From the NCBI GenBank assembly GCA_964057225.1, contig OZ059896.1, positions 13,144,001 through 13,208,000 of the forward strand: DNA of 64,000 bases, given 5' to 3'. The notes under the pieces were generated by a model. It worked only from the letters and a program-made list of their open reading frames with translations, made no database searches and was not told the DNA's origin. This DNA is from Auanema rhodensis (lineage: Eukaryota; Animalia; Nematoda). Shown here in pieces: positions 1-61,480 of the stretch. Made by a program: the position numbers and the translations under genes. Numbering within the stretch: position 1 is the stretch's first letter; each line of letters begins with the position of its first letter.

Positions 1-3000
1 ATAAAGAGATGCGGTTCTCAAAATTAGATTACCCATGTCCATATTAGTCTGAAAACAAATTTTTATTGATATTGGTGCATGGTAATCATGACTTTGAAAT
101 TTACGTGAACTTTAATTTATGCTAATTAATTGTACACGTGATGTGCACATGGTATGTAACTCGCTTCCCGTTAAAGATAAAGAGATGCGGTTTTCAAAAT
201 TAGATTACCCATGTCCATATTAGTCAAAGAACAAATTTTAATCGATATTGGTTCATGGTAACCATGACTTTGAAATTTACGTGAACTTTAATTTATGCTA
301 ATTAATTTTACACGTGATGTGCACATGGTATGTAACTCGCTTCCCGTGAAAGATAAAGAAATGCGGTTCTCAAAATTAGATTCCTCATGTCCATATTAGT
401 CTAAGAACAAATTTTTATTGATATTGGTTCATGGTAACCATGACTTTGAAATTTAAGTGAACTTTAATTTATGCCAATTAATTGTACACGTAATGTGCAC
501 ATGGTATGTAACTCGCTTCCCGTGAAAGATAAAGAAATGCGGTTCTCAAAATTAGATTCCTCATGTCCATATTAGTCTAAGAACAAATTTTAATCGATAT
601 TGGTTCATGGTAACCATGACTTTGAAATTTACGTGAACTTTAATTTATGCTAATTAATTGTACACGTGATGTGCACATGGTATGTAACTCGCTTCCCGTG
701 AAAGATAAAGAGATGCGGTTCTCAAAATTAGATTACCCATGTCCATATTAGTCTGAAAACAAATTTTTATTGATATTGGTGCATGGTAATCATGACTTTG
801 AAATTTACGTGAACTTTAATTTATGCTAATTAAATGTACACGTAATGTGCACATGGTATGTAACTCGCTTCCCGTGAAAGATAAAGAAATGCGGTTCTCA
901 AAATTAGATTCCTCATGTCCATATTAGTCTAATAACAAATTTTAATCGATATTGGTTCATGGTAACCATGAGTTTGAAATTTACGTGAACTTTAATTTAT
1001 GCTAATTAATTGTACACGTGATGTGCACATGGTATGTAACTCGCTTCCCGTTAAAGATAAAGAGATGCGGTTTTCAAAATTAGATTACCCATGTCCATAT
1101 TAGTCAAAGAACAAATTTTTATTGATATTGGTTCATGGTAACCATGACTTTGAAATTTACGTGACCTTTAATTTATGCTAATTAATTGTACACGTGATGT
1201 GCACATGGTATGTAACTCGCTTCCCGTGAAAGATAAAGAAATGCGGTTCTCAAAATTAGATTCCTCATGTCCATATTAGTCTAAGAACAAATTTTAATCG
1301 ATATTGGTTCATGGTAACCATGACTTTGAAATTTACGTGAACTTTAATTTATGCTAATTAATTGTACACGTGATGTGCACATGGTATGTAACTCGCTTCC
1401 CGTGAAAGATAAAGAGATGCGGTTCTCAAAATTAGATTACCCATGTCCATATTAGTCTGAAAACAAATTTTTATTGATATTGGTGCATGGTAATCATGAC
1501 TTTGAAATTTACGTGAACTTTAATTTATGCTAATTAAATGTACACGTAATGTGCACATGGTATGTAACTCGCTTCCCGTGAAAGATAAAGAAATGCGGTT
1601 CTCAAAATTAGATTCCTCATGTCTATATTAGTCTAAGAACAAATTTTAATCGATATTGGTTCATGGTAACCATGAGTTTGAAATTTACGTGAACTTTAAT
1701 TTATGCTAATTAATTGTACACGTGATGTGCACATGGTATGTAACTCGCTTCCCGTTAAAGATAAAGAAATGCGGTTCTCAAAATTAGATTCCTCATGTCC
1801 ATATTAGTCTAAGAACAAATTTTAATCGATATTGGTTCATGGTAACCATGAGTTTGAAATTTACGTGAACTTTAATTTATGCTAATTAATTGTACACGTG
1901 ATGTGCACATGGTATGTAACTCGCTTCCCGTTAAAGATAAAGAGATGCGGTTTTCAAAATTTGATTACCCATGTCCATATTAGTCAAAGAACAAATTTTT
2001 ATTGATATTGGTTCATGGTAACCATGACTTTGAAATTTACGTGACCTTTAATTTATGCTAATTAATTGTACACGTGATGTGCACATGGTATGTAACTCGC
2101 TTCCCGTGAAAGATAAAGAGATGCGGTTCTCAAAATTAGATTCCTCATGTCCATATTAGTCTAAGAACAAATTTTAATCGATATTGGTTCATGGTAACCA
2201 TGACTTTGAAATTTACGTGAACTTTAATTTATGCTAATTAATTGTACACGTGATGTGCACATGGTATGTAACTCGCTTCCCGTGAAAGATAAAGAGATGC
2301 GGTTTTCAAAATTAGATTCCTCATGTCCATATTAGTCTAAGAACAAATTTTAATCGATATTGGTTCATGGTAACCATGACTTTGAAATTTACGTGAACTT
2401 TAATTTATGCTAATTAATTGTACACGTGATGTGCACATGGTATGTAACTCGCTTCCCGTTAAAGATAAAGAGATGCGGTTTTCAAAATTTGATTACCCAT
2501 GTCCATTTTAGTCAAAGAACAAATTTTTATTGATATTGGTTTATGGTAACCATGAGTTTGAAATTTACGTGACCTTTAATTTATGCTAATTAATTGTACA
2601 CGTGATGTGCACATGGTATGTAACTCGCTTCCCGTGAAAGATAAAGAGATGCGGTTCTCAAAATTAGATTCCTCATGTCCATATTAGTCTAAGAACAAAT
2701 TTTAATCGATATTGGTTCATGGTAACCATGACTTTGAAATTTACGTGAACTTTAATTTATGCTAATTAATTGTACACGTGATGTGCACATGGTATGTAAC
2801 TCGCTTCCCGTTAAAGATAAAGAGATGCGGTTTTCAAAATTAGATTCTTCATGTCCATATTAGTCTAAGAACAAATTTTAATCGATATTGGTTCATGGTA
2901 ACCATGACTTTGAAATTCACGTGAACTTTAATTTATGCTAATTAATTGTACACGTGATGTGTACAAGGTATGTAACTCGCTTCCCGTGAAAGATAAAGAA

Positions 3001-3566
3001 ATGCGGTTCTCAAAATTAGATTCCTCATGTCCATATTAGTCTAAGAACAAATTTTAATCGATATTGGTTAATGGTAACCATGACTTTGAAATTTACGTGA
3101 ACTTTAATTTATGCTAATTAATTTTACACGTGATGTGCACATGGTATGTAACTCGCTTCCCGTTAAAGATAAAGAGATGCGGTTTTCAAAATTAGATTAC
3201 CCATGTCCATATTAGTCAAACAACAAATTTTTATTGATATTGGTTCATGGTAACCATGACTTTGAAATTTACGTGAACTTTAATTTATGCTAATTAATTG
3301 TACACGTGATGTGCACATGGTATGTAACTCGCTTCCCGTTAAAGATAAAGAGATGCGATTTTCAAAGTTAGATTCCTCATGTCTATATTAGTCTAATAAC
3401 AAATTTTTATTGATACATGGTAACCATGACTTTGAAATTTACGTGAACTTTAATTTATGCTAATTAATTGTACACGTGATGTGCACATGGTATGTAACTC
3501 GCTTCCCGTTAAAGATAAAGAGATGCGGTTCTCAAAATTAGATTCCTCATGTCCATATTAGTCTAA
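1..3566 (+). repeat. 176-bp satellite array, forward block (~20 monomers, runs off the window start)
   Basis: ATAAAGAGATGCGG recurs at 1, 177, 353 and onward (period 176). Monomers differ by a few substitutions; one has a 6-bp deletion near 3415. Confidence 0.98.
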
Positions 3567-6500
3567 TCTCTTTATCTTTAACGGGAAGCGAGTCACATAC
3601 CATGTGCACATCACGTGTACAATTAATTAGCATAAATTAAAGGTCACGTAAATTTCAAAGTCATGGTTACCATGAACCAATATCAATAAAAATTTGTTCT
3701 TTGACTAATATGGACATGGGTAATCAAATTTTGAAAACCGCATCTCTTTATCTTTAACGGGAAGCGAGTTACATACCATGTGCACATCACGTGTACAATT
3801 GATTAGCATAAATTAAAGTTCACGTAAATTTCAAACTCATGGTTACCATGAACCAATATCGATTAAAATTTGTTCTTAGACTAATATGGACATGAGGAAT
3901 CTAATTTTGAGAACCGCATTTCTTTATCTTTCACGGGAAGCGAGTTACATACCATGTGCACATTACGTGTACATTTAATTAGCATAAATTAAAGTTCACG
4001 TAAATTTCAAAGTCATGGTTACCATGAACCAATATCGATTAAAATTTGTTCTTAGACTAATATGGACATGAGGAATCTAATTTTGAGAACCGCATTTCTT
4101 TATCTTTCACGGGAAGCGAGTTACATACCATGTGCACATCACGTGTACAATTAATTAGCATAAATTAAAGTTCACGTAAATTTCAAAGTCATGGTTACCA
4201 TGAACCAATATCAATAAAAATTTGTTCTTTGACTAATATGGACATGGGTAATCAAATTTTGAAAACCGCATCTCTTTATCTTTAACGGGAAGCGAGATAC
4301 ATACCATGTGCACATCACGTGTACAATTAATTAGCATAAATTAAAGTTCACGTAAATTTCAAACTCATGGTTACCATGAACCAATATCGATTAAAATTTG
4401 TTCTTAGACTAATATGGACATGAGGAATCTAATTTTGAGAACCGCATTTCTTTATCTTTCACGGGAAGCGAGTTACATACCATGTGCACATTACGTGTAC
4501 ATTTAATTAGCATAAATTAAAGTTCACGTAAATTTCAAAGTCATGGTTACCATGAACCAATATCGATTAAAATTTGTTCTTAGACTAATATGGACATGAG
4601 GAATCTAATTTTGAGAACCGCATTTCTTTATCTTTCACGGGAAGCGAGTTACATACCATGTGCACATCACGTGTACAATTAATTAGCATAAATTAAAGTT
4701 CACGTAAATTTCAAAGTCATGGTTACCATGAACCAATATCAATAAAAATTTGTTCTTTGACTAATATGGACATGGGTAATCTAATTTTGAAAACCGCATC
4801 TCTTTATCTTTAACGGGAAGCGAGTTACATACCATGTGCACATCACGTGTACAATTAATTAGCATAAATTAAAGTTCACGTAAATTTCAAAGTCATGGTT
4901 ACCATGAACCAATATCGATTAAAATTTGTTCTTAGACTAATATGGACATGAGGAATCTAATTTTGAAAACCGCATCTCTTTATCTTTAACGGGAAGCGAG
5001 TTACATACCATGTGCACATTACGTGTACATTTAATTAGCATAAATTAAAGTTCACTTAAATTTCAAAGTCATGGTTACCATGAACCAATATCGATTAAAA
5101 TTTGTTCTTAGACTAATATGGACATGAGGAATCTAATTTTGAGAACCGCATTTCTTTATCTTTCACGGGAAGCGAGTTACATACCATGTGCACATCACGT
5201 GTACAATTAATTAGCATAAATTAAAGTTCACGTAAATTTCAAAGTCATGGTTACCATGAACCAATATCAATAAAAATTTGTTCTTTGACTAATATGGACA
5301 TGGGTAATCTAATTTTGAAAACCGCATCTCTTTATCTTTAACGGGAAGCGAGTTACATACCATGTGCACATCACGTGTACAATTAATTAGCATAAATTAA
5401 AGTTCACGTAAATTTCAAAGTCATGATTACCATGCACCAATATCAATAAAAATTTGTTTTCAGACTAATATGGACATGGGTAATCTAATTTTGAGAACCG
5501 CATCTCTTTATCTTTCACGGGAAGCGAGTTACATACCATGTGCACATCACGTGTACAATTAATTAGCATAAATTAAAGTTCACGTAAATTTCAAAGTCAT
5601 GGTTACCATGAACCAATATCAATAAAAATTTGTTCTTTGACTAATATGGACATGGGTAATCTAATTTTGAAAACCGCATCTCTTTATCTTTAACGGGAAG
5701 CGAGTTACATACCATGTGCACATCACGTGTACAATTAATTAGCATAAATTAAAGTTCACGTAAATTTCAAAGTCATGGTTACCATGAACCAATATCAATA
5801 AAAATTTGTTCTTTGACTAATATGGACATGGGTAATCTAATTTTGAAAACCGCATCTCTTTATCTTTAACGGGAAGCGAGTTACATACCATGTGCACATC
5901 ACGTGTACAATTAATTTGCATAAATTATAGTTCACGTAAATTTCAAAGTCATGGTTACCATGAACCAATATCGATTAAAATTTGTTCTTAGACTAATATG
6001 GACATGAGGAATCTAATTTTGAAAACCGCATCTCTTTATCTTTAACGGGAAGCGAGTTATATACCATGTGCACATCACGTGTACAATTAATTAGCATGAA
6101 TTAAAGTTCACGTAAATTTCAAAGTCATGATTACCATGCACCAATATCAATAAAAATTTGTTTTCAGACTAATATGGACATGGGTAATCTAATTTTGAGA
6201 ACCGCATCTCTTTATCTTTCACGGGAAGCGAGTTACATACCATGTGCACATCACGTGTACAATTAATTAGCATAAATTAAAGTTCACGTAAATTTCAAAG
6301 TCATGGTTACCATGAACCAATATCGATTAAAATTTGTTCTTAGACTAATATGGACATGAGGAATCTAATTTTGAGAACCGCATTTCTTTATCTTTCACGG
6401 GAAGCGAGTTACATACCATGTGCACATTACGTGTACATTTAATTAGCATAAATTAAAGTTCACTTAAATTTCAAAGTCATGGTTACCATGAACCAATATC

Positions 6501-9500
6501 GATTAAAATTTGTTCTTAGACTAATATGGACATGGGTAATCTAATTTTGAGAACCGCATCTCTTTATCTTTAACGGGAAGCGAGTTACATACCATGTGCA
6601 CATCACGTGTACAATTAATTAGCATAAATTAAAGTTCACGTAAATTTCAAAGTCATGGTTACCATGAACCAATATCAATAAAAATTTGTTCTTTGACTAA
6701 TATGGACATGGGTAATCTAATTTTGAAAACCGCATCTCTTTATCTTTAACGGGAAGCGAGTTACATACCATGTGCACATCACGTGTACAATTAATTAGCA
6801 TAAATTATAGTTCACGTAAATTTCAAAGTCATGGTTACCATGAACCAATATCGATTAAAATTTGTTCTTAGACTAATATGGACATGAGGAATCTAATTTT
6901 GAAAACCGCATCTCTTTATCTTTAACGGGAAGCGAGTTATATACCATGTGCACATCACGTGTACAATTAATTAGCATGAATTAAAGTTCACGTAAATTTC
7001 AAAGTCATGATTACCATGCACCAATATCAATAAAAATTTGTTTTCAGACTAATATGGACATGGGTAATCTAATTTTGAGAACCGCATCTCTTTATCTTTC
7101 ACGGGAAGCGAGTTACATACCATGTGCACATCACGTGTACAATTAATTAGCATAAATTAAAGTTCACGTAAATTTCAAAGTCATGGTTACCATGAACCAA
7201 TATCGATTAAAATTTGTTCTTAGACTAATATGGACATGAGGAATCTAATTTTGAGAACCGCATTTCTTTATCTTTCACGGGAAGCGAGTTACATACCATG
7301 TGCACATTACGTGTACATTTAATTAGCATAAATTAAAGTTCACGTAAATTTCAAAGTCATGGTTACCATGAACCAATATCGATTAAAATTTGTTCTTAGA
7401 CTAATATGGACATGAGGAATCTAATTTTGAGAACCGCATTTCTTTATCTTTCACGGGAAGCGAGTTACATACCATGTGCACATCACGTGTACAATTAATT
7501 AGCATAAATTAAAGTTCACGTAAATTTCAAAGTCATGGTTACCATGAACCAATATCAATAAAAATTTGTTCTTTGACTAATATGGACATGGGTAATCTAA
7601 TTTTGAAAACCGCATCTCTTTATCTTTAACGGGAAGCGAGTTACATACCATGTGCACATCACGTGTACAATTAATTAGCATAAATTAAAGTTCACGTAAA
7701 TTTCAAAGTCATGATTACCATGCACCAATATCAATAAAAATTTGTTTTCAGACTAATATGGACATGGGTAATCTAATTTTGAGAACCGCATCTCTTTATC
7801 TTTCACGGGAAGCGAGTTACATACCATGTGCACATCACGTGTACAATTAATTAGCATAAATTAAAGTTCACGTAAATTTCAAAGTCATGGTTACCATGAA
7901 CCAATATCGATTAAAATTTGTTCTTAGACTAATATGGACATGAGGAATCTAATTTTGAAAACCGCATCTCTTTATCTTTAACGGGAAGCGAGTTATATAC
8001 CATGTGCACATCACGTGTACAATTAATTAGCATGAAATAAAGTTCACGTAAATTTCAAAGTCATGATTACCATGCACCAATATCAATAAAAATTTGTTTT
8101 CAGACTAATATGGACATGGGTAATCTAATTTTGAGAACCGCATCTCTTTATCTTTCACGGGAAGCGAGTTACATACCATGTGCACATTACGTGTACATTT
8201 AATTAGCATAAATTAAAGTTCACTTAAATTTCAAAGTCATGGTTACCATGAACCAATATCGATTAAAATTTGTTCTTAGACTAATATGGACATGAGGAAT
8301 CTAATTTTGAGAACCGCATTTCTTTTTCTTTCACGGGAAGCGAGTTACATACCATGTGCACATCACGTGTACAATTAATTAGCATAAATTAAAGGTCACG
8401 TAAATTTCAAAGTCATGGTTACCATGAACCAATATCAATAAAAATTTGTTCTTTGACTAATATGGACATGGGTAATCTAATTTTGAAAACCGCATCTCTT
8501 TATCTTTAACGGGAAGCGAGTTACATACCATGTGCACATCACGTGTACAATTAATTAGCATAAATTAAAGTTCACGTAAATTTCAAAGTCATGGTTACCA
8601 TGAACCAATATCGATTAAAATTTGTTCTTAGACTAATATGGACATGAGGAATCTAATTTTGAGAACCGCATTTCTTTATCTTTCACGGGAAGCGAGTTAC
8701 ATACCATGTGCACATCACGTGTACAATTAATTAGCATAAATTAAAGTTCACGTAAATTTCAAAGTCATGGTTACCATGAACCAATATCAATAAAAATTTG
8801 TTCTTTGACTAATATGGACATGGGTAATCTAATTTTGAAAACCGCATCTCTTTATCTTTAACGGGAAGCGAGTTACATACCATGTGCACATCACGTGTAC
8901 AATTAATTAGCATAAATTAAAGTTCACGTAAATTTCAAAGTCATGGTTACCATGAACCAATATCGATTAAAATTTGTTCTTAGACTAATATGGACATGAG
9001 GAATCTAATTTTGAAAACCGCATCTCTTTATCTTTAACGGGAAGCGAGTTATATACCATGTGCACATCACGTGTACAATTAATTAGCATGAATTAAAGTT
9101 CACGTAAATTTCAAAGTCATGATTACCATGCACCAATATCAATAAAAATTTGTTTTCAGACTAATATGGACATGGGTAATCTAATTTTGAGAACCGCATC
9201 TCTTTATCTTTCACGGGAAGCGAGTTACATACCATGTGCACATCACGTGTACAATTAATTAGCATAAATTAAAGTTCACGTAAATTTCAAAGTCATGGTT
9301 ACCATGAACCAATATCGATTAAAATTTGTTCTTAGACTAATATGGACATGAGGAATCTAATTTTGAGAACCGCATTTCTTTATCTTTCACGGGAAGCGAG
9401 TTACATACCATGTGCACATTACGTGTACATTTAATTAGCATAAATTAAAGTTCACTTAAATTTCAAAGTCATGGTTACCATGAACCAATATCGATTAAAA

Positions 9501-11926
9501 TTTGTTCTTAGACTAATATGGACATGAGGAATCTAATTTTGAGAACCGCATTTCTTTATCTTTTACGGGAAGCGAGTTACATACCATGTGCACATCACGT
9601 GTACAATTAATTAGCATAAATTAAAGTTCACGTAAATTTCAAAGTCATGGTTACCATGAACCAATATCAATAAAAATTTGTTCTTTGACTAATATGGACA
9701 TGGGTAATCTAATTTTGAAAACCGCATCTCTTTATCTTTAACGGGAAGCGAGTTACATACCATGTGCACATCACGTGTACAATTAATTAGCATAAATTAA
9801 AGTTCACGTAAATTTCAAAGTCATGATTACCATGCACCAATATCAATAAAAATTTGTTTTCAGACTAATATGGACATGGGTAATCTAATTTTGAGAACCG
9901 CATCTCTTTATCTTTCACGGGAAGCGAGTTACATACCATGTGCACATCACGTGTACAATTAATTAGCATAAATTAAAGTTCACGTAAATTTCAAAGTCAT
10001 GGTTACCATGAACCAATATCAATAAAAATTTGTTCTTTGACTAATATGGACATGGGTAATCTAATTTTGAAAACCGCATCTCTTTATCTTTAACGGGAAG
10101 CGAGTTACATACCATGTGCACATCACGTGTACAATTAATTAGCATAAATTAAAGTTCACGTAAATTTCAAAGTCATGGTTACCATGAACCAATATCAATA
10201 AAAATTTGTTCTTTGACTAATATGGACATGGCTAATCTAATTTTGAAAACCGCATCTCTTTATCTTTAACGGGAAGCGAGTTACATACCATGTGCACATC
10301 ACGTGTACAATTAATTAGCATAAATTAAAGTTCACGTAAATTTCAAAGTCATGGTTACCATGAACCAATATCGATTAAAATTTGTTCTTAGACTAATATG
10401 GACATGAGGAATCTAATTTTGAAAACCGCATCTCTTTATCTTTAACGGGAAGCGAGTTATATACCATGTGCATGTGCGAACCAATATCGATTAAAATTTG
10501 TTCTTAGACTAATATGGACATGAGGAATCTAATTTTGAGAACCGCATTTCTTTATCTTTCACGGGAAGCGAGTTACATACCATGTGCACATTACGTGTAC
10601 ATTTAATTAGCATAAATTAAAGTTCACGTAAATTTCAAAGTCATGGTTACCATGAACCAATATCAATAAAAATTTGTTCTTTGACTAATATGGACATGGG
10701 TAATCTAATTTTGAAAACCGCATCTCTTTATCTTTAACGGGAAGCGAGTTACATACCATGTGCACATCACGTGTACAATTAATTAGCATAAATTAAAGTT
10801 CACGTAAATTTCAAAGTCATGGTTACCATGAACCAATATCAATAAAAATTTGTTCTTTGACTAATATGGACATGGGTAATCTAATTTTGAAAACCGCATC
10901 TCTTTATCTTTAACGGGAAGCGAGTTACATACCATGTGCACATCACGTGTACAATTAATTAGCATAAATTAAAGTTCACGTAAATTTCAAAGTCATGATT
11001 ACCATGCACCAAGATCAATAAAAATTTGTTTTCAGACTAATATGGACATGGGTAATCTAATTTTGAGAACCGCATCTCTTTATCTTTCACGGGAAGCGAG
11101 TTACATACCATGTGCACATCACGTGTACAATTAATTAGCATAAATTAAAGTTCACGTAAATTTCAAAGTCATGGTTACCATGAACCAATATCGATTAAAA
11201 TTTGTTCTTAGACTAATATGGACATGAGGAATCTAATTTTGAAAACCGCATCTCTTTATCTTTAACGGGAAGCGAGTTATATACCATGTGCACATCACGT
11301 GTACAATTAATTAGCATAAATTAAAGTTCACGTTAATTTCAAAGTCATGGTTACCATGAACCAATATCGATTAAAATTTGTTCTTAGACTAATATGGACA
11401 TGAGGAATCTAATTTTGAAAACCGCATCTCTTTATCTTTAACGGGAAGCGAGTTATATACCATGTGCACATCACGTGTACAATTAATTAGCATGAATTAA
11501 AGTTCACGTAAATTTCAAAGTCATGGTTACCATGCACCAATATCAATAAAAATTTGTTATTAGACTAAAATGGACATGAGGAATCTAATTTTGAGAACCG
11601 CATTTCTTTATCTTTCACGGGAAGCGAGTTACATACCATGTGCACATCACGTGTACAATTAATTAGCATAAATTAAAGTTCACGTAAATTTCAAAGTCAT
11701 GGTTACCATGAACCAATATCAATAAAAATTTGTTCTTAGACTAATATGGACAAGGGTAATCTAATTTTGAAAACCGCATCTCTTTATCTTCAACGGGAAG
11801 CGAGTTACATACCATGTGCACATCACGTGTACAATTAATTAGCATGAATTAAAGTTCACGTAAATTTCAAAGTCATGGTTACCATGAACCAATATCAATA
11901 AAAATTTGTTTTCAGACTAATATGGA
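3566..11926 (-). repeat. 176-bp satellite array, reverse-orientation block (~47 monomers)
   Basis: Reverse complement of the same monomer, starting at ...GTCTAA|TCTCTTTATC (3566) and ending at ...AATATGGA (11926). One 65-bp deletion near 10472. Confidence 0.98.
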
Positions 11927-11966
11927 AGTAGAGAGCCGTGCAAAATTTACTAACCACGCCCCCAAA

Positions 11967-12080
11967 CAGTTGCTAAAAACATACTTTTGGGGGCGTCAGC
12001 TGCTAAAAACATACTTTTGGGGCGCGTCAGCTGTCAAAAACATATTTTTGAGCGTCAGCTGTTAAAATCATATTTTGGGA
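11967..12080 (+). repeat. Four ~30-bp subterminal direct repeats (CAGCTGYYAAAAACATAYTTTTGGG..) in the left arm; mirrored at about 14195-14310
   Basis: Units start at 11967, 11997, 12028 and 12056. ACGCCCCCAAA (11956-11966) can pair with TTTGGGGGCGT (11986-11996). Confidence 0.9.
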
Positions 12081-12424
12081 TCATGGTTCATGGATTTTCC
12101 TTTTTTAAATTTAAAAATCATGATTTAAAGCATGATTTTTTTTTTTTTTTTTAAATCAAATTTTAAATTTGTTTATTCAAATGTATGTATTTAGTTTTAA
12201 TTATTTTTAAATATATTAAGTAAAAATAAAAATTATAAATTTTAAATATTTAAATATGTAAATTTGTTTTTTAAATTTCATTTATTTATTAAATTTATTA
12301 ATAATGTTTGTTTACTTATTTTGTTTATTTTTTATTGTATTGTGTTTGTACTATTTTTTTGTATTTTAAAGAACAGTAAAATTTTTGCATGTATATCGTT
12401 TTGTTCACCGTACCTGTTACGGGT

Positions 12425-12582
12425 AATTCAATGGAACACATATCGAAGGTTAATTCGATAAGAACGATATGAAATACAAAATTCAATGGAACACATTTCG
12501 AAGGTTAATTCGATAAGAACGATATAAAATACCAAAATTTAATGGAACACATATCGAAAGTTAATTCGATAAGAACGACATT
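12425..12582 (+). repeat. Three ~55-bp direct repeats (AATTCAATGGAACACATATCGAAGGTTAATTCGATAAGAACGATAT..) in the left arm; mirrored at about 13680-13840
   Basis: Units start at 12425, 12480 and 12536. Confidence 0.9.
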
Positions 12583-14347
12583 AAATTATTAATTTTTGAA
12601 ATTACAAATTGTTATTAATTATATTTATTGTAACAAGTAAAGGTTTCAAATTATAATAAAAGATTAGTTTTAAACTTTATTTTACTAATATAACAATACA
12701 ATAACTCTATAGAGCACACAATGAAGGTAAATACAATAAGATTAACAAACAGTTGCGCTGACCTCAATGAAACGCATAAAGTTAATTTAATAAGAAGGAA
12801 TAACAAAAATTAATCCGACGGGGACAATAAAAACAGATGTATTCAATAAGCTTATTTATTTTAAAGTTTATCGCAACTGCTAGTTTTGACAGCTGTACCT
12901 AAATCCATGTTACATAACAAATTACAATGCCAACAGCAATGTGTAGACTGATGTATTCATTATATCAAGGTACAATGGCTGCTAATAGGTTGTGTCTTTT
13001 TGATTATTTGTTGTAAACTTTTTCTTTTTTTAGTTATAAACGTTTATGTGAAGAGCTAGGATTTGATTTTTTTTTTTTTGAATCTTTATATATATAAATA
13101 TTTCAAACATTTTGAACTAGTAAAATAATAAAACACCATCTTGACCTTTTCATTTATTTTTAAACATTAACAAATGTTTATAAAAGTTTTTTCAAAGTTG
13201 AAAAAAAAAAATCTTTAAAAAATCTTATAACTAAAAAAAGAAAAAGTTTACAAACAAATAATCAAAAAGACACAACCTATTAGCAGCCATTGTACCTTGA
13301 TATAATGAATACATCAGTCTACACATTGCTGTTGGCATTGTAATTTGTTATGTAACATGGATTTAGGTACAGCTGTCAAAACTAGCAGTTGCGATAAACT
13401 TTAAAATAAATAAGCTTATTGAATACATCTGTTTTTATTGTCCCCGTCGGATTAATTTTTGTTATTCCTTCTTATTAAATTAACTTTATGCGTTTCATTG
13501 AGGTCAGCGCAACTGTTTGTTAATCTTATTGTATTTACCTTCATTGTGTGCTCTATAGAGTTATTGTATTGTTATATTAGTAAAATAAAGTTTAAAACTA
13601 ATCTTTTATTATAATTTGAAACCTTTACTTGTTACAATAAATATAATTAATAACAATTCGCAATTTCAAAAATTAATAATTTAATGTCGTTCTGATCGAA
13701 TTAACTTTCGATATGTGTTCCATTAAATTTTGGTATTTTATATCGTTCTTATCGAATTAACCTTCGATATGTGTTCCATTGAATTTTGTATTTCATATCG
13801 TTCTTATCGAATTAACCTTCGATATGTGTTCCATTGAATTACCCGTAACAAGTACGGTGAACAAAACGATATACATGCAAAAATTTTACTGTTCTTTAAA
13901 ATACAAAAAAATAGTACAAACACAATACAATAAAAAATAAACAAAATAAGTAAACAAACATTATTAATAAATTTAATAAATAAATGAAATTTAAAAAACA
14001 AATTTACATATTTAAATATTTAAATATTTAAAATTTATAATTTTTATTTTTACTTAATATATTTAAAAATAATTAAAACTATATACATACATTTGAATAA
14101 ACAAATTTAAAATTTGATTTAAAAAAAAAAAAAAAAAATCATGCTTTAAATCATGATTTTTAAATTTAAAAAAGGAAAATCCATGAACCATGATCCCAAA
14201 ATATGATTTTAACAGCTGACGCTCAAAAATATGTTTTTGACAGCTGACGCGCCCCAAAAGTATGTTTTTAGCAGCTGACGCCCCCAAAAGTATGTTTTTA
14301 GCAACTGTTTGGGGGCGTGGTTAGTAAATTTTGCACGGCTCTCTACT

Positions 14348-15488
14348 TCCATATTAGTCTGAAAACAAATTTTTATTGATATTGGTTCATGGTAACCATG
14401 ACTTTGAAATTTACGTGAACTTTAATTCATGCTAATTAATTGTACACGTGATGTGCACATGGTATGTAACTCGCTTCCCGTTAAAGATAAAGAGATGCGG
14501 TTTTCAAAATTAGATTACCCTTGTCCATATTAATCTAAGAACAAATTTTTATTTACACGTGATGTGCACATGGTATGTAACTCGCTTCCCGTGAAAGATA
14601 AAGAGACGCGGTTTTCAAAATTAGATTCCCCATGTCCATATTAGTCTAAACACAAATTTTAGTCGATATTGGTTCATGGTAACCATGACTTTGAAATTTA
14701 CGTGAACTTTAATTTATGCTAATTAATTGTACACGTGATGTGCACATGGTATATAACTCGCTTCCCGTTAAAGATAAAGAGACGCGGTTTTCAAAATTAG
14801 ATTCCCCATGTCCATATTAGTCTAAACACAAATTTTATTCGATATTGGTTCATGGTAACCATGACTTTGAAATTTACGTGAACTTTAATTTATGCTTATT
14901 AAATGTACACGTGATGTGCACATGGTATGTAACTCGCTTCCCGTGAAAGATAAAGAGACGCGGTTTTCAAAATTAGATTCCCCATGTCCATATTAGTCTA
15001 AACACAAATTTTATTCGATATTGGTTCATGGTAACCATGACTTTGATATTTACGTGAACTTTAATTTATGCTTATTAAATGTACACGTGATGTGCACATG
15101 GTATGTAACTCGCTTCCCGTGAAAGATAAAGAGACGCGGTTTTCAAAATTAGATTCCCCATGTCCATATTAGTCTAAACACAAATTTTATTCGATATTGG
15201 TTCATGGTAACCATGACTTTGAAATTTACGTGAACTTTAATTTATGCTTATTAAATGTACACGTGATGTGCACATGGTATGTAACTCGCTTCCCGTGAAA
15301 GATAAAGAGACGCGGTTTTCAAAATTAGATTCCCCATGTCCATATTAGTCTAAACACAAATTTTAGTCGATATTGGTTCATGGTAACCATGACTTTGAAA
15401 TTTACGTGAACTTTAATTTATGCTAATTAATTGTACACGTGATGTGCACATGGTATGTAACTCGCTTCCCCTGAAAGATAAAGAGATG
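14348..15488 (+). repeat. 176-bp satellite, terminal forward block (~6.5 monomers), mostly a distinct variant subfamily
   Basis: 14348-14552 mirrors 11725-11926. After a deletion at about 14553, monomers carry private variants GAGACGCGG, ATTCCCCATG and CTAAACACAA. Confidence 0.97.
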
Positions 15489-55691: not shown

Positions 55692-58600
55692 TTATTGCGT
55701 TCCATTTTCTCTTCTGTTGAAAACATTTGTTCCTCGTAGATAAATGCTTTTAATATTTGAAAAATGTGAGAGAATGTAATGAAGTATTAAAACCATCAAG
55801 GAAAGCTGAAAGAATTGTTACAGTGTCATGACTTCTTTCAAAAGTACTTACAATTCGAAATACTAAGAAATAAATGAGAAACGTTGGAACAAGAAATAAT
55901 AAGAGGGAAAAAAGTACCGTTGCCACAAACTGCTCACGAGAATCAAGGCATACCTGAATAAATAAATAATCTATGAGTAACAAAAGTGTTTAGTTATCTC
56001 CTGAAAACTCACACTGTCAACTCTTTGTCTCAGTGGATTCCATTTATGACCTGTTAGTGCTCTCCATAGTGATACTAGTGACAACCAACACAGGCTGCAC
56101 AATCTAAACCAATATAATTAGGATTTATACGACTAAAACGGATTCAGAACGCATATTTATTATTAAAAAACAATTAAAAAGACATTAAAATAAGGTATGG
56201 TAGCTACTATTTCTATTCCCCCTAATCAACGAGACTTTCTAACTCTAATTGATAGACCAATAAAGCCGATAAAATAAAAGATGAAAATAAATCCGATCAT
56301 AAAGATTTGATCATATACAAAGTTATCAGCGCTGAAAGAATACTGGGCAAGAATACCATCTCGAGTCTGGAAAAACACAATAAGAAGTAAACTAACTCAA
56401 GAGTTATGGACAAAAATATACCGTATCACTCCAAGTTGTAGAATTTGGTTCATTAACCTTTTCCCATTGATTGATAGCAAGCGCCTCGAATCCATATCTA
56501 AATATGTCCAAAGTTTAATCTGAAAAAGGTGGATTCATAATACCTGAACCAACTTAGATATTGAATCCATTGTACGTATGATGGCAGAGCTCCAACATTT
56601 GCATACAACCCTCCAGTCAAAGATAACAAGGTTAATAAAGGGCCGGCTAAGGAAACCGCAATCTAATAACTTTTTTGTATACATTGAAATCCAAAGAAAC
56701 ATACTGGGTATGAAGGGCAGACGGTTGACAGCATCACACCAAAGGCAGCAGAGGACTGTTCTATTAAGAAACTAATAAAGCATGCAAACAAGACCTAAAA
56801 ACAAAAGCTGAAGAAAAAAAAGAAAACATCACAAATCTAACCTGGGATAATGAATTGGAAAAACCAGCAAGCCAATAAGATATTAACAGCATTAACAATC
56901 CATCAAGTGTGAATAAAGGAACATATGACATAGATCGAGCAAAATAGTAGCTAAACCAAAAGTCTTTAAAATTTCTAAATTAACTTTATGAACCTAAATA
57001 TATTATATATTCCATCATGATATTCGCGAACAACAAGAGGATAATCAGCAGGAAGGAAAGTCAGAATACCAAACAAAGTTGAATAGGTTAGTTCACAAAC
57101 CAAGTAGAAAAGAGCACCGTTTAAGTTTGAAATACCCACAGAAGTAAGAGGACTCTAATTCAAATTTCAGACAATATTAATCTGTTATGACTTACTTGTA
57201 AATATAACAAGCCGATAAATAATCCCATAACAGATTTTTGAATTAGTTTAGCACGAGCCAACGAAGGATTTCTCCAATTGTCCAAAAATGAGCTAAAGGA
57301 TGAACGTTTTATCTACAAACAAATTTGGAAAACTACCGGTAAAGCAATGCAGATACTTGAGTGCCCAATGAAACTTGTTTTCGCCCTTCCGGTACGATAC
57401 CTTTCTCAATACTGGCTATTTCGTTAGCTACTTCCTTTCCAGCAGAACTAAAATTACGCTGTCGACGATTATTTGTCATAAACATACTCATTTTCGAATT
57501 TATTACAAATCTCCGAAATTCGCGTTTGGCATTCTCGCTCTTCACTAGGAACTACTGCTAATGTGTGAATAATCATGTCAGCAGGGTTATAGTTATGAGG
57601 ACATGGATAACCACAAGCTTCAAAAAATTGAATGCATCCCTTTGGTGTGCCCATATAAGCAGTGCGGCCCCCAGCTAAATATGATTTAAAAAATGCGAAT
57701 AAAAACTTTCAAACCTAGAAATATTACCCTATCAAACATAAGATAGAGCTGACTTGCTGGCTGGTGAATAGTGCATATGACAGTTCTGATTATGATGATT
57801 ATTTTATACGCTGTTAAATGATTAAACGATTCAAAACCTTCCACTTCGGGCTAATTTGGATAACACTTGAACCACACTTTCAGCCATAAACGAATCCAGG
57901 CCAGTTGTAGGTTCATCACAAAATAATAATGCGGGATTAGATAATAATTCACAAGCAAACGTTAGTCGTCTAGCTTCTCCCCCTGAAATTGAATTCCATA
58001 ATTATAAAACAGCTACTCCGGGTCTCTTATCATTTAAAAAAGAAGCAGGTCACATTATATTGGTTGATAAGATCAATATTTAAAAAAGAAATCAAAGTCG
58101 ATCACCTGATATTCCTTTTTTAACACCAATCACTCCAATTCTCGTATTCTGACATTTCCAAAGTCCCAACTGAGTAAGAACAGTATTAACTCTTTTCTCT
58201 CTCTTGGCAGCTGATCCAGAAACTCTCAGTCTTGCCTTAGAAAATAACAACAATACTTACACATATAATATATTACCTGTATAGTAAGATATTCTCTAAC
58301 AGTCAATGTTCCCACAAACAACTCTTCTTGCTGAGCATATCCAGAAATAGCCGTTATATTATGACCAATCTAAAGACAGCTTTAGCAAAACTTTACTCGG
58401 ATTGAAAAGTAACCTCATGTCCATTAACTTCAACATTGCCTTGAACATCTAAGCCTTTTAAATTTCTTGCCAACAAAGTATTTAGCAAGGTCGTTTTACC
58501 GGCGCCACTAAAGGTTTTCTTAAGAATTAAGAAAGAACACAATGTTCCATACCTAGCACCCATGAGTGCAACCAACTCTCCTGGTCTGGCAACTCCTGAT

Positions 58601-59586
58601 ACACCATGAAGAACATGACGATTAGAGCTTTGAACAGAAACCCTAACAAAAATCTGATTTCTATAATAGAGCAGAACCAACCTTATGTCTTTCCAAGAAA
58701 GAGTAATGGGATCTACAGTCTCAAGAGCAGATTCTGTAGTTGAAAAGGCAGCACCATATTCCGATTGGTTAACAGAAAGTAAACTCGTAGTTTCTTCCAT
58801 AGTTTTTAGAAATATTAAGAAGAGATACAGGCAAGGACACACAATACATATACACTAGATAAGAATACAGAGGTGATCAATAACACGCCTCTTTTGAACT
58901 TTAGTATCAAGATACAAAATAGTAGCTACCATATCCATTGTTTGTAAAAAGATAAAAAAACTAACCTAGAAGCATATATATCGAAGCACTTGATATGTAG
59001 AGATAATACTGTCATAACATCGGCAAAAACTGCACAAGTAAACGAAAACCCTAGACATAGTGAATATACGAAAATATTCCATAATAAAGGTATCTTCAGA
59101 AACTCGATAAATGCTGAAGAATAAGTTAATGGTGTATAGGAACTGTAATCTAACTTTGCCATAAATATATATGATAACGAAAAAAACCAGCTAGAGCTGT
59201 GTTAACGGGCTCGTTCAGCTTAAATCCCGCAGGATTTTCTGTTAAAATTGTAACGAGCTGCAAGAAAAATTACTTCAACCAGTAATTAAGATAATATTAT
59301 AAATATTAAGCAATCGAATCTACATCTAGCAACACCTTCGCTTACCTGGTCCATCATATCAATCAGTTCATTTAATATGCTCCAAAAATACTTATACGAT
59401 AAGTCCATGTCCAAACACAAAAATATAATACATCCAAATAAAATATCCAAAATAGTGCACACATCGCATGAAAAACTATATAGGATGCGATTTTGAAATC
59501 AGAATATTTGTGTACCTTCTTTTCCAATATTTTTTATAATGTTTCACCACCTCCAAATTGTTTGTGTACTCATTAATGCTAATCAT
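55692..59586 (-). CDS. pigq-1: GPI-GlcNAc transferase subunit PIG-Q/GPI1; one intron (56104-58965) contains the white gene
   Basis: [26 protein letters not shown] and [18 protein letters not shown] lie upstream of the intron. [31 protein letters not shown]|[24 protein letters not shown] lies downstream. The phase-2 junction AG|A is in frame. Confidence 0.85.
56226..58800 (-). CDS. White-family ABCG half-transporter (wht), nested in a PIG-Q intron
   Basis: Walker A MGASGAGKTT, signature [10 protein letters not shown], Walker [23 protein letters not shown], then a C-terminal TM domain; stop at 56226. Confidence 0.93.
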
Positions 59587-59705
59587 ACTTAATTATCAAT
59601 ATATAAGTTTTATCTATTGGATTTAACAGTATTACATAGTTCCGGACTAAACATGGACGAAACACAGTTAATGAATATTTTATTTCTAGCTCCTGCCTAA
59701 TCTAT

Positions 59706-61480
59706 TTAGAGCTTTCCTTGGGCGGCAAGTTTTGCCTTCAATGACTCGGGCATCTCTGGGGGAGGTGGACGAGGAATGTTGAGAGCAACCTTCACAGAAT
59801 CGTAAATAAACCATTGAAGAGCGGTGAGTGTTCCAATCATAATGATACGAGGACCAAGACCCTTCCATAATCCACCAAATCCTATCTTCTTGATGATACC
59901 TCCAACGGAAGCGTTAGCATCTTGGTTCAATTTGGAGACGAGAGTATCAGCTGGATGGGAAACAACAGCGCAGAAAACTCCTGTAGTATATGTGTATAAA
60001 AAATAAAATATGAAAGACAAACCAGCAATATATCCAGCAACAAAGGTAACAACCAACTGTTCACCCTTAGAGCAATCAGCGCGAGGCTTTGGTACAGCAT
60101 ATTGATAGAGAAGTTCGACAGTTCTCTCGAAGCAAGCGAATTTCATCATGGTGTATGGAATTTGTCTCATCCAGAGAGGAGGAAGACCCTAGATGGCAAA
60201 ATTAAATTAGTCTTTATCAGATTGCTTTACCTTGAAAAATCCGCCAAGTCCCTCTGCTTTGTAAATAAGTGGAGCACATCCACGGAGAGTTGGTGGAACT
60301 CCAACAGCAGTTTGAACACGAACTTTAGTGGCTTCCATAGGAGCCAAAAGAATATCAGCGAAAAACTCAGCAGATGCAGAAGCGGCCAAATATAATGCAG
60401 TACGGTAGAGGTATGCATTTTCCTCTCCAATAGCGTCTCCATACACATTCTTGAACACTTCATAGAATCCGAACTTTCCAAGCCCTTGAAGAGAATATCC
60501 AACTAAAGTTGGAGCCCATCCTTTAGCGAGAGCTCTAACTCCCTCTTCAGCAACAGTTGTTCTGAAACCAGAAACAATTCCACTGTACTTCTCAGGATTT
60601 ACCTAAAAAATAATTAAGAAAAATCAAACATAGAAATTCTAACTTGAATTCTACACTTGATCAAATCAAGTGGAACGATGGCTGTATGTGTAAGACCGCA
60701 TGATAAAACACCTCCGAAAGCGCACAAGGCATAATATTTACCGGATCCAAATTCAACAGCTCCTCCTGCAACATTATAGCAATTACATTTACATTTCACT
60801 ATCAAACCTATCACACTTGGTATTGTCGTGCTTAATACCGAAATACCAATTTGTAAAGCATTATATGAAAAATCGTACGAAAGCCACTCAATTAAACCAT
60901 CAACTAGCTTACAAAAACACCAAAAATATAAAACAATCCAGCTGAATATTATCACAATCCAACCCAAAGTCCCCCCCCTGTATTGTGGGCTATTAGCGAG
61001 AATCAAATACGGATAACTCTTTTCTTGAGTTTCAGAAGTCATGACAAATTAAATAATTATGGATAAAACTAAAGCATTCGTCCAAACAATCCACGCAAAC
61101 AGCCACGTTCCGCCAGATTGAAATCTCTCAAATCGATAGATGCGCCGCCCCTTCGAAAAGTAACATATTGTAAATATCAGAACAAATTATTAGAACTAAA
61201 CTGGTGTGGCAACCTTTCTGAACTCAATTGCAAATATGAAAACATAATTTATTTTCAATGGAACAAAAAAGCTTTTATAAAATAACAAAGCTAATAGGAT
61301 ACTCAAAGCTATATTCACCACTTTCACAAAAATTCATACGATTTTTCATATAATAGAAACAACTCTCTTACATTACTAATTCTTACCGTTTTGAGCTCCA
61401 CTAGCACATGAAGCAGATCTAACAGGAAGACAGAAAGGATTTGATTTAGCAGACTCTGTTAATTGGCTAAAGGCTCCCAT
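59706..61480 (-). CDS. Mitochondrial phosphate carrier (SLC25A3-like)
   Basis: MGAFSQLTESAKSNPFCLPVRS, CGLTHTAIVPLDLIKCRIQ, GWAPTLVGYS, LWMRQIPYTMMKFACFE, PRPPPPEMPESLKAK. First intron is 60766-61386. Confidence 0.96.

Follow-up and report, generated by a model that had tools for sequence, protein, structure and literature searches.

How can a gene be read correctly when one of its introns holds a second, complete multi-exon gene in the same orientation? The question is raised by a locus in a 64,000-nucleotide (nt) stretch of the nematode Auanema rhodensis (assembly GCA_964057225.1, contig OZ059896.1, positions 13,144,001 to 13,208,000; the whole stretch is referred to below as the window), where an intron of the host gene PIG-Q (Gpi1), an essential gene of GPI anchoring whose product would act in the GPI-GlcNAc transferase complex, encloses a guest gene for a white-type ABCG transporter. 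The reading that we favor, at a probability of about 0.7, is that of an ancient nested pair in an operon-like unit: PIG-Q is cis-spliced with the aid of an RNA stem that bridges the long intron, while the ABCG mRNA comes either from an internal promoter or from host transcripts that do not undergo this splicing.

The first step is to establish both genes and their relative position. PIG-Q occupies positions 59586-55692 on the minus strand, which also carries the other features of the locus given below; the gene has seven exons encoding 252 amino acids, separated by canonical GT..AG introns, and scripted joining leaves the frame open. Exon 1 (59516-59586, with the ATG at 59586), exon 2 (59346-59475), exon 3 (59155-59257), and exon 4 (58966-59113) lie upstream of the guest, and exon 4 ends with ...YAS and two bases of an Arg codon. 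Then follow intron 4 (56104-58965, 2862 nt; donor 58966/58965, acceptor 56104/56103), exon 5 (56013-56103), exon 6 (55852-55953), and exon 7 (55692-55805, including the stop codon). Profile and database searches were run exon by exon, and the exon joins were used only as frame checks. Exons 3, 4, 5, and 6 score 27-30 bits each against the Pfam Gpi1 profile (PF05024, cut-off 22.2) and are colinear, matching profile positions 78-110, 120-160, 164-192, and 196-225, respectively. The profile continues from exon 4 to exon 5, hence nothing is missing over intron 4. A search of solved structures with exons 4 and 5 gave no useful match.

The guest (56226-58800) lies wholly within intron 4, on the same strand, with host exons of one reading frame on both sides. 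Judged by its sequence, it is a white-type ABCG half transporter of 16 exons and 610 amino acids, with ABC_tran followed by ABC2_membrane. The ATG is at 58800 and the stop codon at 56226-56228; the 15 GT..AG introns are 39-123 nt long, and the frame is open. ABC_tran matches exons 3 and 6, and ABC2_membrane_7 and ABC2_membrane match exons 8, 10, 11, 12, and 14, in order; single exons each stay below the Pfam cut-off, the four ABC2_membrane matches totaling about 81 bits. The translated exons show intact motifs for Walker A (exons 2-3), the ABC signature (exons 5-6), and Walker B (exon 6), and the orthologues in relatives have the complete set of transporter families.

The nesting had been proposed in an earlier note on this stretch, and all its coordinates for the pair were confirmed, with the frame kept over 58966/56103. 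The note had put intron 4 at about 60 times the usual length. The other five introns of PIG-Q are 40-88 nt long, and the other 20 introns of the two genes together have a median of 44 nt, so intron 4 is about 65 times longer; most introns of the A. rhodensis genome are likewise about 44 nt. It is also true, as the note argued, that a PIG-Q mRNA can be made only by bypassing internal signals, i.e., 15 ABCG introns and one poly(A) signal, and that the latter (AATAAA, 56161-56156) is close to the host acceptor, at 52 nt upstream of it.

Is the arrangement an artifact, or are the two halves of PIG-Q relics? Both possibilities had been raised together with the nesting itself, and neither survives. 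An assembly error or a relic is ruled out by the same nesting in relatives and by the uniqueness of the locus, the only Gpi1 locus found by profile search of the genome (181 Mb, 112 contigs). Recent duplication or misassembly is ruled out as well: a second DNA copy of the 4.1-kb stretch was not found in the genome, and the nearest ABCG paralogue exon is only 57% identical and lies 3.5 Mb away. No direct repeats of the target-site-duplication type were found flanking the insert, and an Rfam search of the window gave no match.

Full nesting at the same PIG-Q intron, always with both genes on one strand, is seen in five other genomes. The closest, Auanema sp. JU1783, has a mitochondrial phosphate-carrier gene, PIG-Q exons 1-4, ABCG, and PIG-Q exons 5-7 in this order, with ABCG exons 76-98% identical. 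Nested likewise are the genes of Ancylostoma ceylanicum, Ancylostoma caninum, Pristionchus mayeri, and Pristionchus pacificus (GCA_000180635.4), the last having a public Gpi1 model of 243 amino acids that spans an ABCG model of 612 amino acids on the same strand. A sixth contig, from GCA_000797555.1, begins in the same way and stops after ABCG exon 2. A Mito_carr gene is the upstream neighbor of PIG-Q in the relatives, the A. caninum contig being without the carrier. The genes are un-nested in two further species. In Caenorhabditis auriculariae, intron 4 is about 41 nt long at the same position, and PIG-Q is followed, some 900 nt downstream, by ABCG on the same strand; Heterodera trifolii has a compact PIG-Q, with ABCG just downstream on the opposite strand. 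The carrier, PIG-Q, and the orthologous ABCG are direct neighbors in both, hence the three genes are, as far as gene order and orthology tell, old neighbors.

From this distribution, the nesting is probably older than the separation of Diplogastridae and the Strongylida/Auanema branch, and un-nesting or loss would have occurred later. Tandem duplication followed by complementary exon loss could have produced the nested form without a lethal intermediate. We conclude that the same-strand nested pair is real and ancient. The nesting is already on record in P. pacificus, where it exists as annotation models only; the stem of the conserved arrangement is new here. All PIG-Q models found with exon 4 among protein representatives (Auanema sp. 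JU1783, A. ceylanicum, A. caninum, Necator americanus, and GCA_000797555.1) end or derail just after ...YASR, that is, at the exon-4 donor, and leave the 3' exons past the nested ABCG unjoined. The public models of Auanema, Ancylostoma, and Necator can hence be corrected at intron 4.

Is PIG-Q spliced over the guest? Full-length Pristionchus models imply a host mRNA joined in this way, and direct RNA evidence is available for one trichostrongyloid relative, from contigs of its Logan-assembled RNA runs; in the N-terminal half, its PIG-Q shares 85-86% identity with the Nippostrongylus and Cooperia proteins. One contig (L016) contains the 3' end of the carrier, an intron-free PIG-Q frame in which exon 4 is joined to exon 5, and a Clc-like gene. 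In 12 contigs, the carrier 3' end is followed by spliced PIG-Q exons 1-4, an unspliced donor, a flank of 485 nt, and fully spliced ABCG. Several of them stop just past the ABCG AATAAA, although contigs do not show RNA ends. The two RNA forms are identical through exons 1-4 and diverge exactly at the exon-4 donor, and one contig is continuous over exon 4, the flank, spliced ABCG, the 3' flank, and exon 5. Hence, in this relative the host junction is used, host and guest are present on one primary transcript, and transcription passes the guest poly(A) signal.

These contigs bear on two other explanations of how the host mRNA arises, both of which had been foreshadowed in the earlier note. According to the first, PIG-Q is put together by bimolecular trans-splicing of two RNAs once ABCG has been excised. 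That the exon-5 acceptor follows the guest poly(A) signal by 52 nt, and that nematodes have an active trans-splicing machinery, would suit such a scheme, but the relative's contig is continuous from exon 4 through ABCG into exon 5, and ordinary cis-splicing is enough. Moreover, the 3' arm of the stem described below lies upstream of the ABCG poly(A) signal both in the window and in Auanema sp. JU1783, so it would leave with the ABCG mRNA and could not tether exon 5 after cleavage. We consider assembly of PIG-Q from two RNAs scarcely credible.

The second is an operon-type either/or choice, in which ABCG has no promoter of its own and each transcript yields either ABCG, by spliced-leader (SL) trans-splicing followed by poly(A) cleavage, or PIG-Q, the stem setting the ratio. 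A host/guest switch had been proposed earlier; two RNA forms parting at the exon-4 donor in the relative fit a choice between host and guest, which may be tissue-specific or mutually exclusive. Contigs in which the carrier 3' end continues into PIG-Q exons 1-4, then into the unspliced flank and on into spliced ABCG, several of them stopping just past the ABCG AATAAA, speak for the either/or scheme, as do the thousands of SL1 genes in the A. rhodensis genome and the distance of just 165 nt between the host donor and the ABCG ATG. However, the contigs may be mere splicing intermediates, and no spliced leader is seen on ABCG in them, although contigs cannot reveal one. Also, a GATA-type site (58857-58862) is found 62 nt upstream of the ABCG ATG, and the four short-intron species with nested ABCG all have such a site 58-68 nt 5' of the start codon. 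These conserved sites hint at an internal ABCG promoter, downstream of the 5' arm of the stem. Overall, a strict either/or choice seems unlikely.

If PIG-Q is cis-spliced, what brings together splice sites that are 2862 nt apart in a genome of very short introns? Both flanks of the guest contain complementary segments, located in the host intron outside the ABCG coding region, which can form a perfect stem of 17 base pairs (bp). The 5' arm (58933-58917) starts 32 nt past the host donor and lies 117 nt upstream of the ABCG ATG; the 3' arm (56212-56196) starts 14 nt past the ABCG stop codon and ends 92 nt short of the host acceptor. Complementarity of 17 nt is reached in none of 1000 shuffles of the flanks (maximum 11), and the minimum-energy fold of the whole 2862-nt intron includes the stem. 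It is one of two perfect inverted repeats of at least 16 nt with a spacing of 200-5000 nt in 48 kb of genic sequence. Window positions 1-15000 were left out of this background count; they consist of satellite sequence with large blocks in inverted orientation, containing hundreds of long perfect inverted repeats.

The stem is also retained in evolution. In Auanema sp. JU1783, the flanks pair as a helix whose register is exactly the same (z = 6 vs. shuffles), and comparison of these two species shows eight identical pairs, two pairs changed on one side, and seven compensatory pairs; the core GGUAGC/GCUACC is retained. Three Pristionchus species have a perfect stem of 13-16 bp at the equivalent place, reached in 0/1000 shuffles each, with a sequence unrelated to that in the window; in P. 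pacificus, its arms occupy positions 10731-10746 and 13924-13939 of locus L032. Among these three species, one compensatory change (G-C to A-U) is observed, and the stem arms are the best-conserved blocks of the intron flanks. For the long flanks of the strongylids, unbounded duplex folding is uninformative and was replaced by local helix scoring and exact-complement statistics.

An inverted repeat could also have no role in splicing, having arisen by chance, as remnant ends of a transposon that brought ABCG, or as a protein-binding palindrome. The partly self-complementary core of the arms would fit the last of these, and strongylids manage without a stem. Against this, none of 1000 shuffles reaches the stem in any of four species, the two Auanema species share the register with seven compensatory pairs, and the Pristionchus stems show a compensatory pair of their own in arms that are islands of conservation. 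Furthermore, the nesting is common to Diplogastridae, Strongylida, and Auanema, and hence is too old for perfect transposon ends to have persisted without selection. A repeat that takes no part in splicing is thus quite improbable, and the stem is a probable intron-bridging helper structure.

With the bridging stem, cis-splicing of PIG-Q could proceed as follows. A polymerase starting upstream would transcribe PIG-Q from exon 1 to exon 7, with all of ABCG between exons 4 and 5, and ordinary cis-splicing of exon 4 to exon 5 would discard the 2.86-kb intron together with ABCG. The stem would cut the path from donor to acceptor to about 125 nt plus the stem itself (about 70-125 nt across these genomes), and this shortened path would help the host splice sites to pair correctly, in competition with 30 ABCG splice sites and the ABCG poly(A) signal. 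The ABCG mRNA would originate at the internal GATA-type promoter, located past the 5' arm, or else come from host transcripts in which exon 4 had not been joined to exon 5. Given a promoter in this position, only host transcripts could form the stem.

This leads to a stronger version, in which the stem serves, in short-intron nematodes, as a mark of transcript identity. Transcripts started upstream would carry the 5' arm, loop out ABCG, and splice PIG-Q, while internal starts would yield ABCG mRNA; the stem would hide or outcompete the ABCG splice sites and poly(A) region, restoring the geometry of a short intron, and oversized introns of this genome may generally be zipped end to end. We propose this version tentatively and put it somewhat short of even odds.

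Several observations weigh against the role assigned to the stem and the promoter. P. fissidentatus, whose PIG-Q intron 4 is 1681 nt long (L030 11102-12782) and contains no detectable ABCG exons, retains a 14-bp stem with the compensatory change though ABCG is gone; hence, it may be the long intron itself, and not the guest, that the stem serves. In hookworms and the trichostrongyloid, which have long flanks and introns, no flank-to-flank stem beyond chance is found, so the stem is not required for nesting as such. The GATA-type sites are individually weak (P 0.002-0.19). Finally, the RNA contigs, which carry no information on abundance or RNA ends, come from the trichostrongyloid relative, and the same RNA forms are expected, by analogy, in A. 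rhodensis.

The favored reading also places the pair in an operon-like unit consisting of the phosphate carrier, then PIG-Q, and then the Clc-like gene. The carrier gene lies upstream of PIG-Q (59707-61479; ATG at 61479, stop codon ending at 59707), with its AATAAA at 59679-59684, about 95 nt upstream of the PIG-Q ATG. The interval from the carrier stop to the PIG-Q ATG is 120 nt here and 123-443 nt in relatives, compared with about 100-400 nt between same-strand genes of nematode operons. This short gap and the RNA contigs of the relative, which join the carrier 3' end to PIG-Q, agree with the earlier suggestion that PIG-Q is a downstream gene of such a unit. As for trans-splicing, the canonical 22-nt SL1 occurs in the genome in about 3450 copies, arranged in tandem arrays whose repeat units measure about 252 and 341 bp, located on contig C3 around 6.74-6.77 Mb and 14.13 Mb, which identifies A. 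rhodensis as a trans-splicing nematode.

End-to-end pairing is predicted in two other oversized introns. The 621-nt first intron of the carrier gene (61386-60766) has a perfect 18-bp stem with arms at 60860-60877 and 61337-61354, spaced 32 nt and 94 nt from donor and acceptor, respectively, which is nearly the geometry of PIG-Q intron 4; it is kept in both the minimum-energy and the centroid folds, and no clear counterpart is found in relatives. For the oversized UAP1 intron (L033 866-1286, about 365-785 nt past the window end), the minimum-energy structure (z = -2.4) has an imperfect helix joining the two intron ends, which is absent from the centroid fold. Other inverted repeats of 14-15 nt in the window show no clear relation to introns.

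Multi-intron genes nested on the same strand are thought to be selected against, since processing of the host mRNA can be disturbed by the splice and poly(A) signals of the guest. The pair described here involves the only PIG-Q gene of the genome and has probably been maintained from before the divergence of Diplogastridae, Strongylida, and the Auanema group. A covarying stem offers a concrete and testable way of tolerating the conflict between host and guest signals, and P. pacificus, a genetically tractable species with a stem of its own at the equivalent site, would allow a direct test. A nematode parallel is the cholinergic locus cha-1/unc-17 of C. elegans, which has a same-strand guest in a host intron and two mRNAs that have 5' sequence in common and diverge through alternative processing. 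Only a non-coding first exon is shared there and the products act in one pathway, whereas in the PIG-Q/ABCG pair the guest is preceded by four coding exons of the host, and the two products have unrelated functions.

In Drosophila, same-strand nesting is common; 72.5% of same-strand guests are single-exon genes, hosts of intron-bearing same-strand guests are less often essential, and the host transcript ignores the guest poly(A) signal as long as there is a 5' splice site upstream (Lee and Chang 2013, PMC3814207; Acta Naturae 2013, PMC3890989). The pair analyzed here resembles these in having a whole guest inside one host intron on the same strand; it differs in having a guest of 16 exons and a host without a second PIG-Q copy, in belonging to an operon-like unit, and in being conserved across nematode suborders. 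Bridging of introns by RNA structure has parallels in flies, fish, and humans, e.g., the long-range intronic pairings of Drosophila (PMC2724269) and introns bridged by complementary repeats (PMC4691745); human conserved complementary regions have, in addition, been proposed to counter premature intronic polyadenylation (PMC8052449). Our literature searches on nested genes and long-range intron structure gave no report of a covarying stem bracketing a complete multi-exon guest gene. The PIG-Q stem is similar to the intron-bridging systems, as its complementary segments lie near both intron ends, are supported by covariation, and may likewise approximate the splice sites; unlike in those systems, the segment looped out here is a complete protein-coding gene, with 15 introns and a poly(A) signal, in genomes where introns are about 44 nt long.

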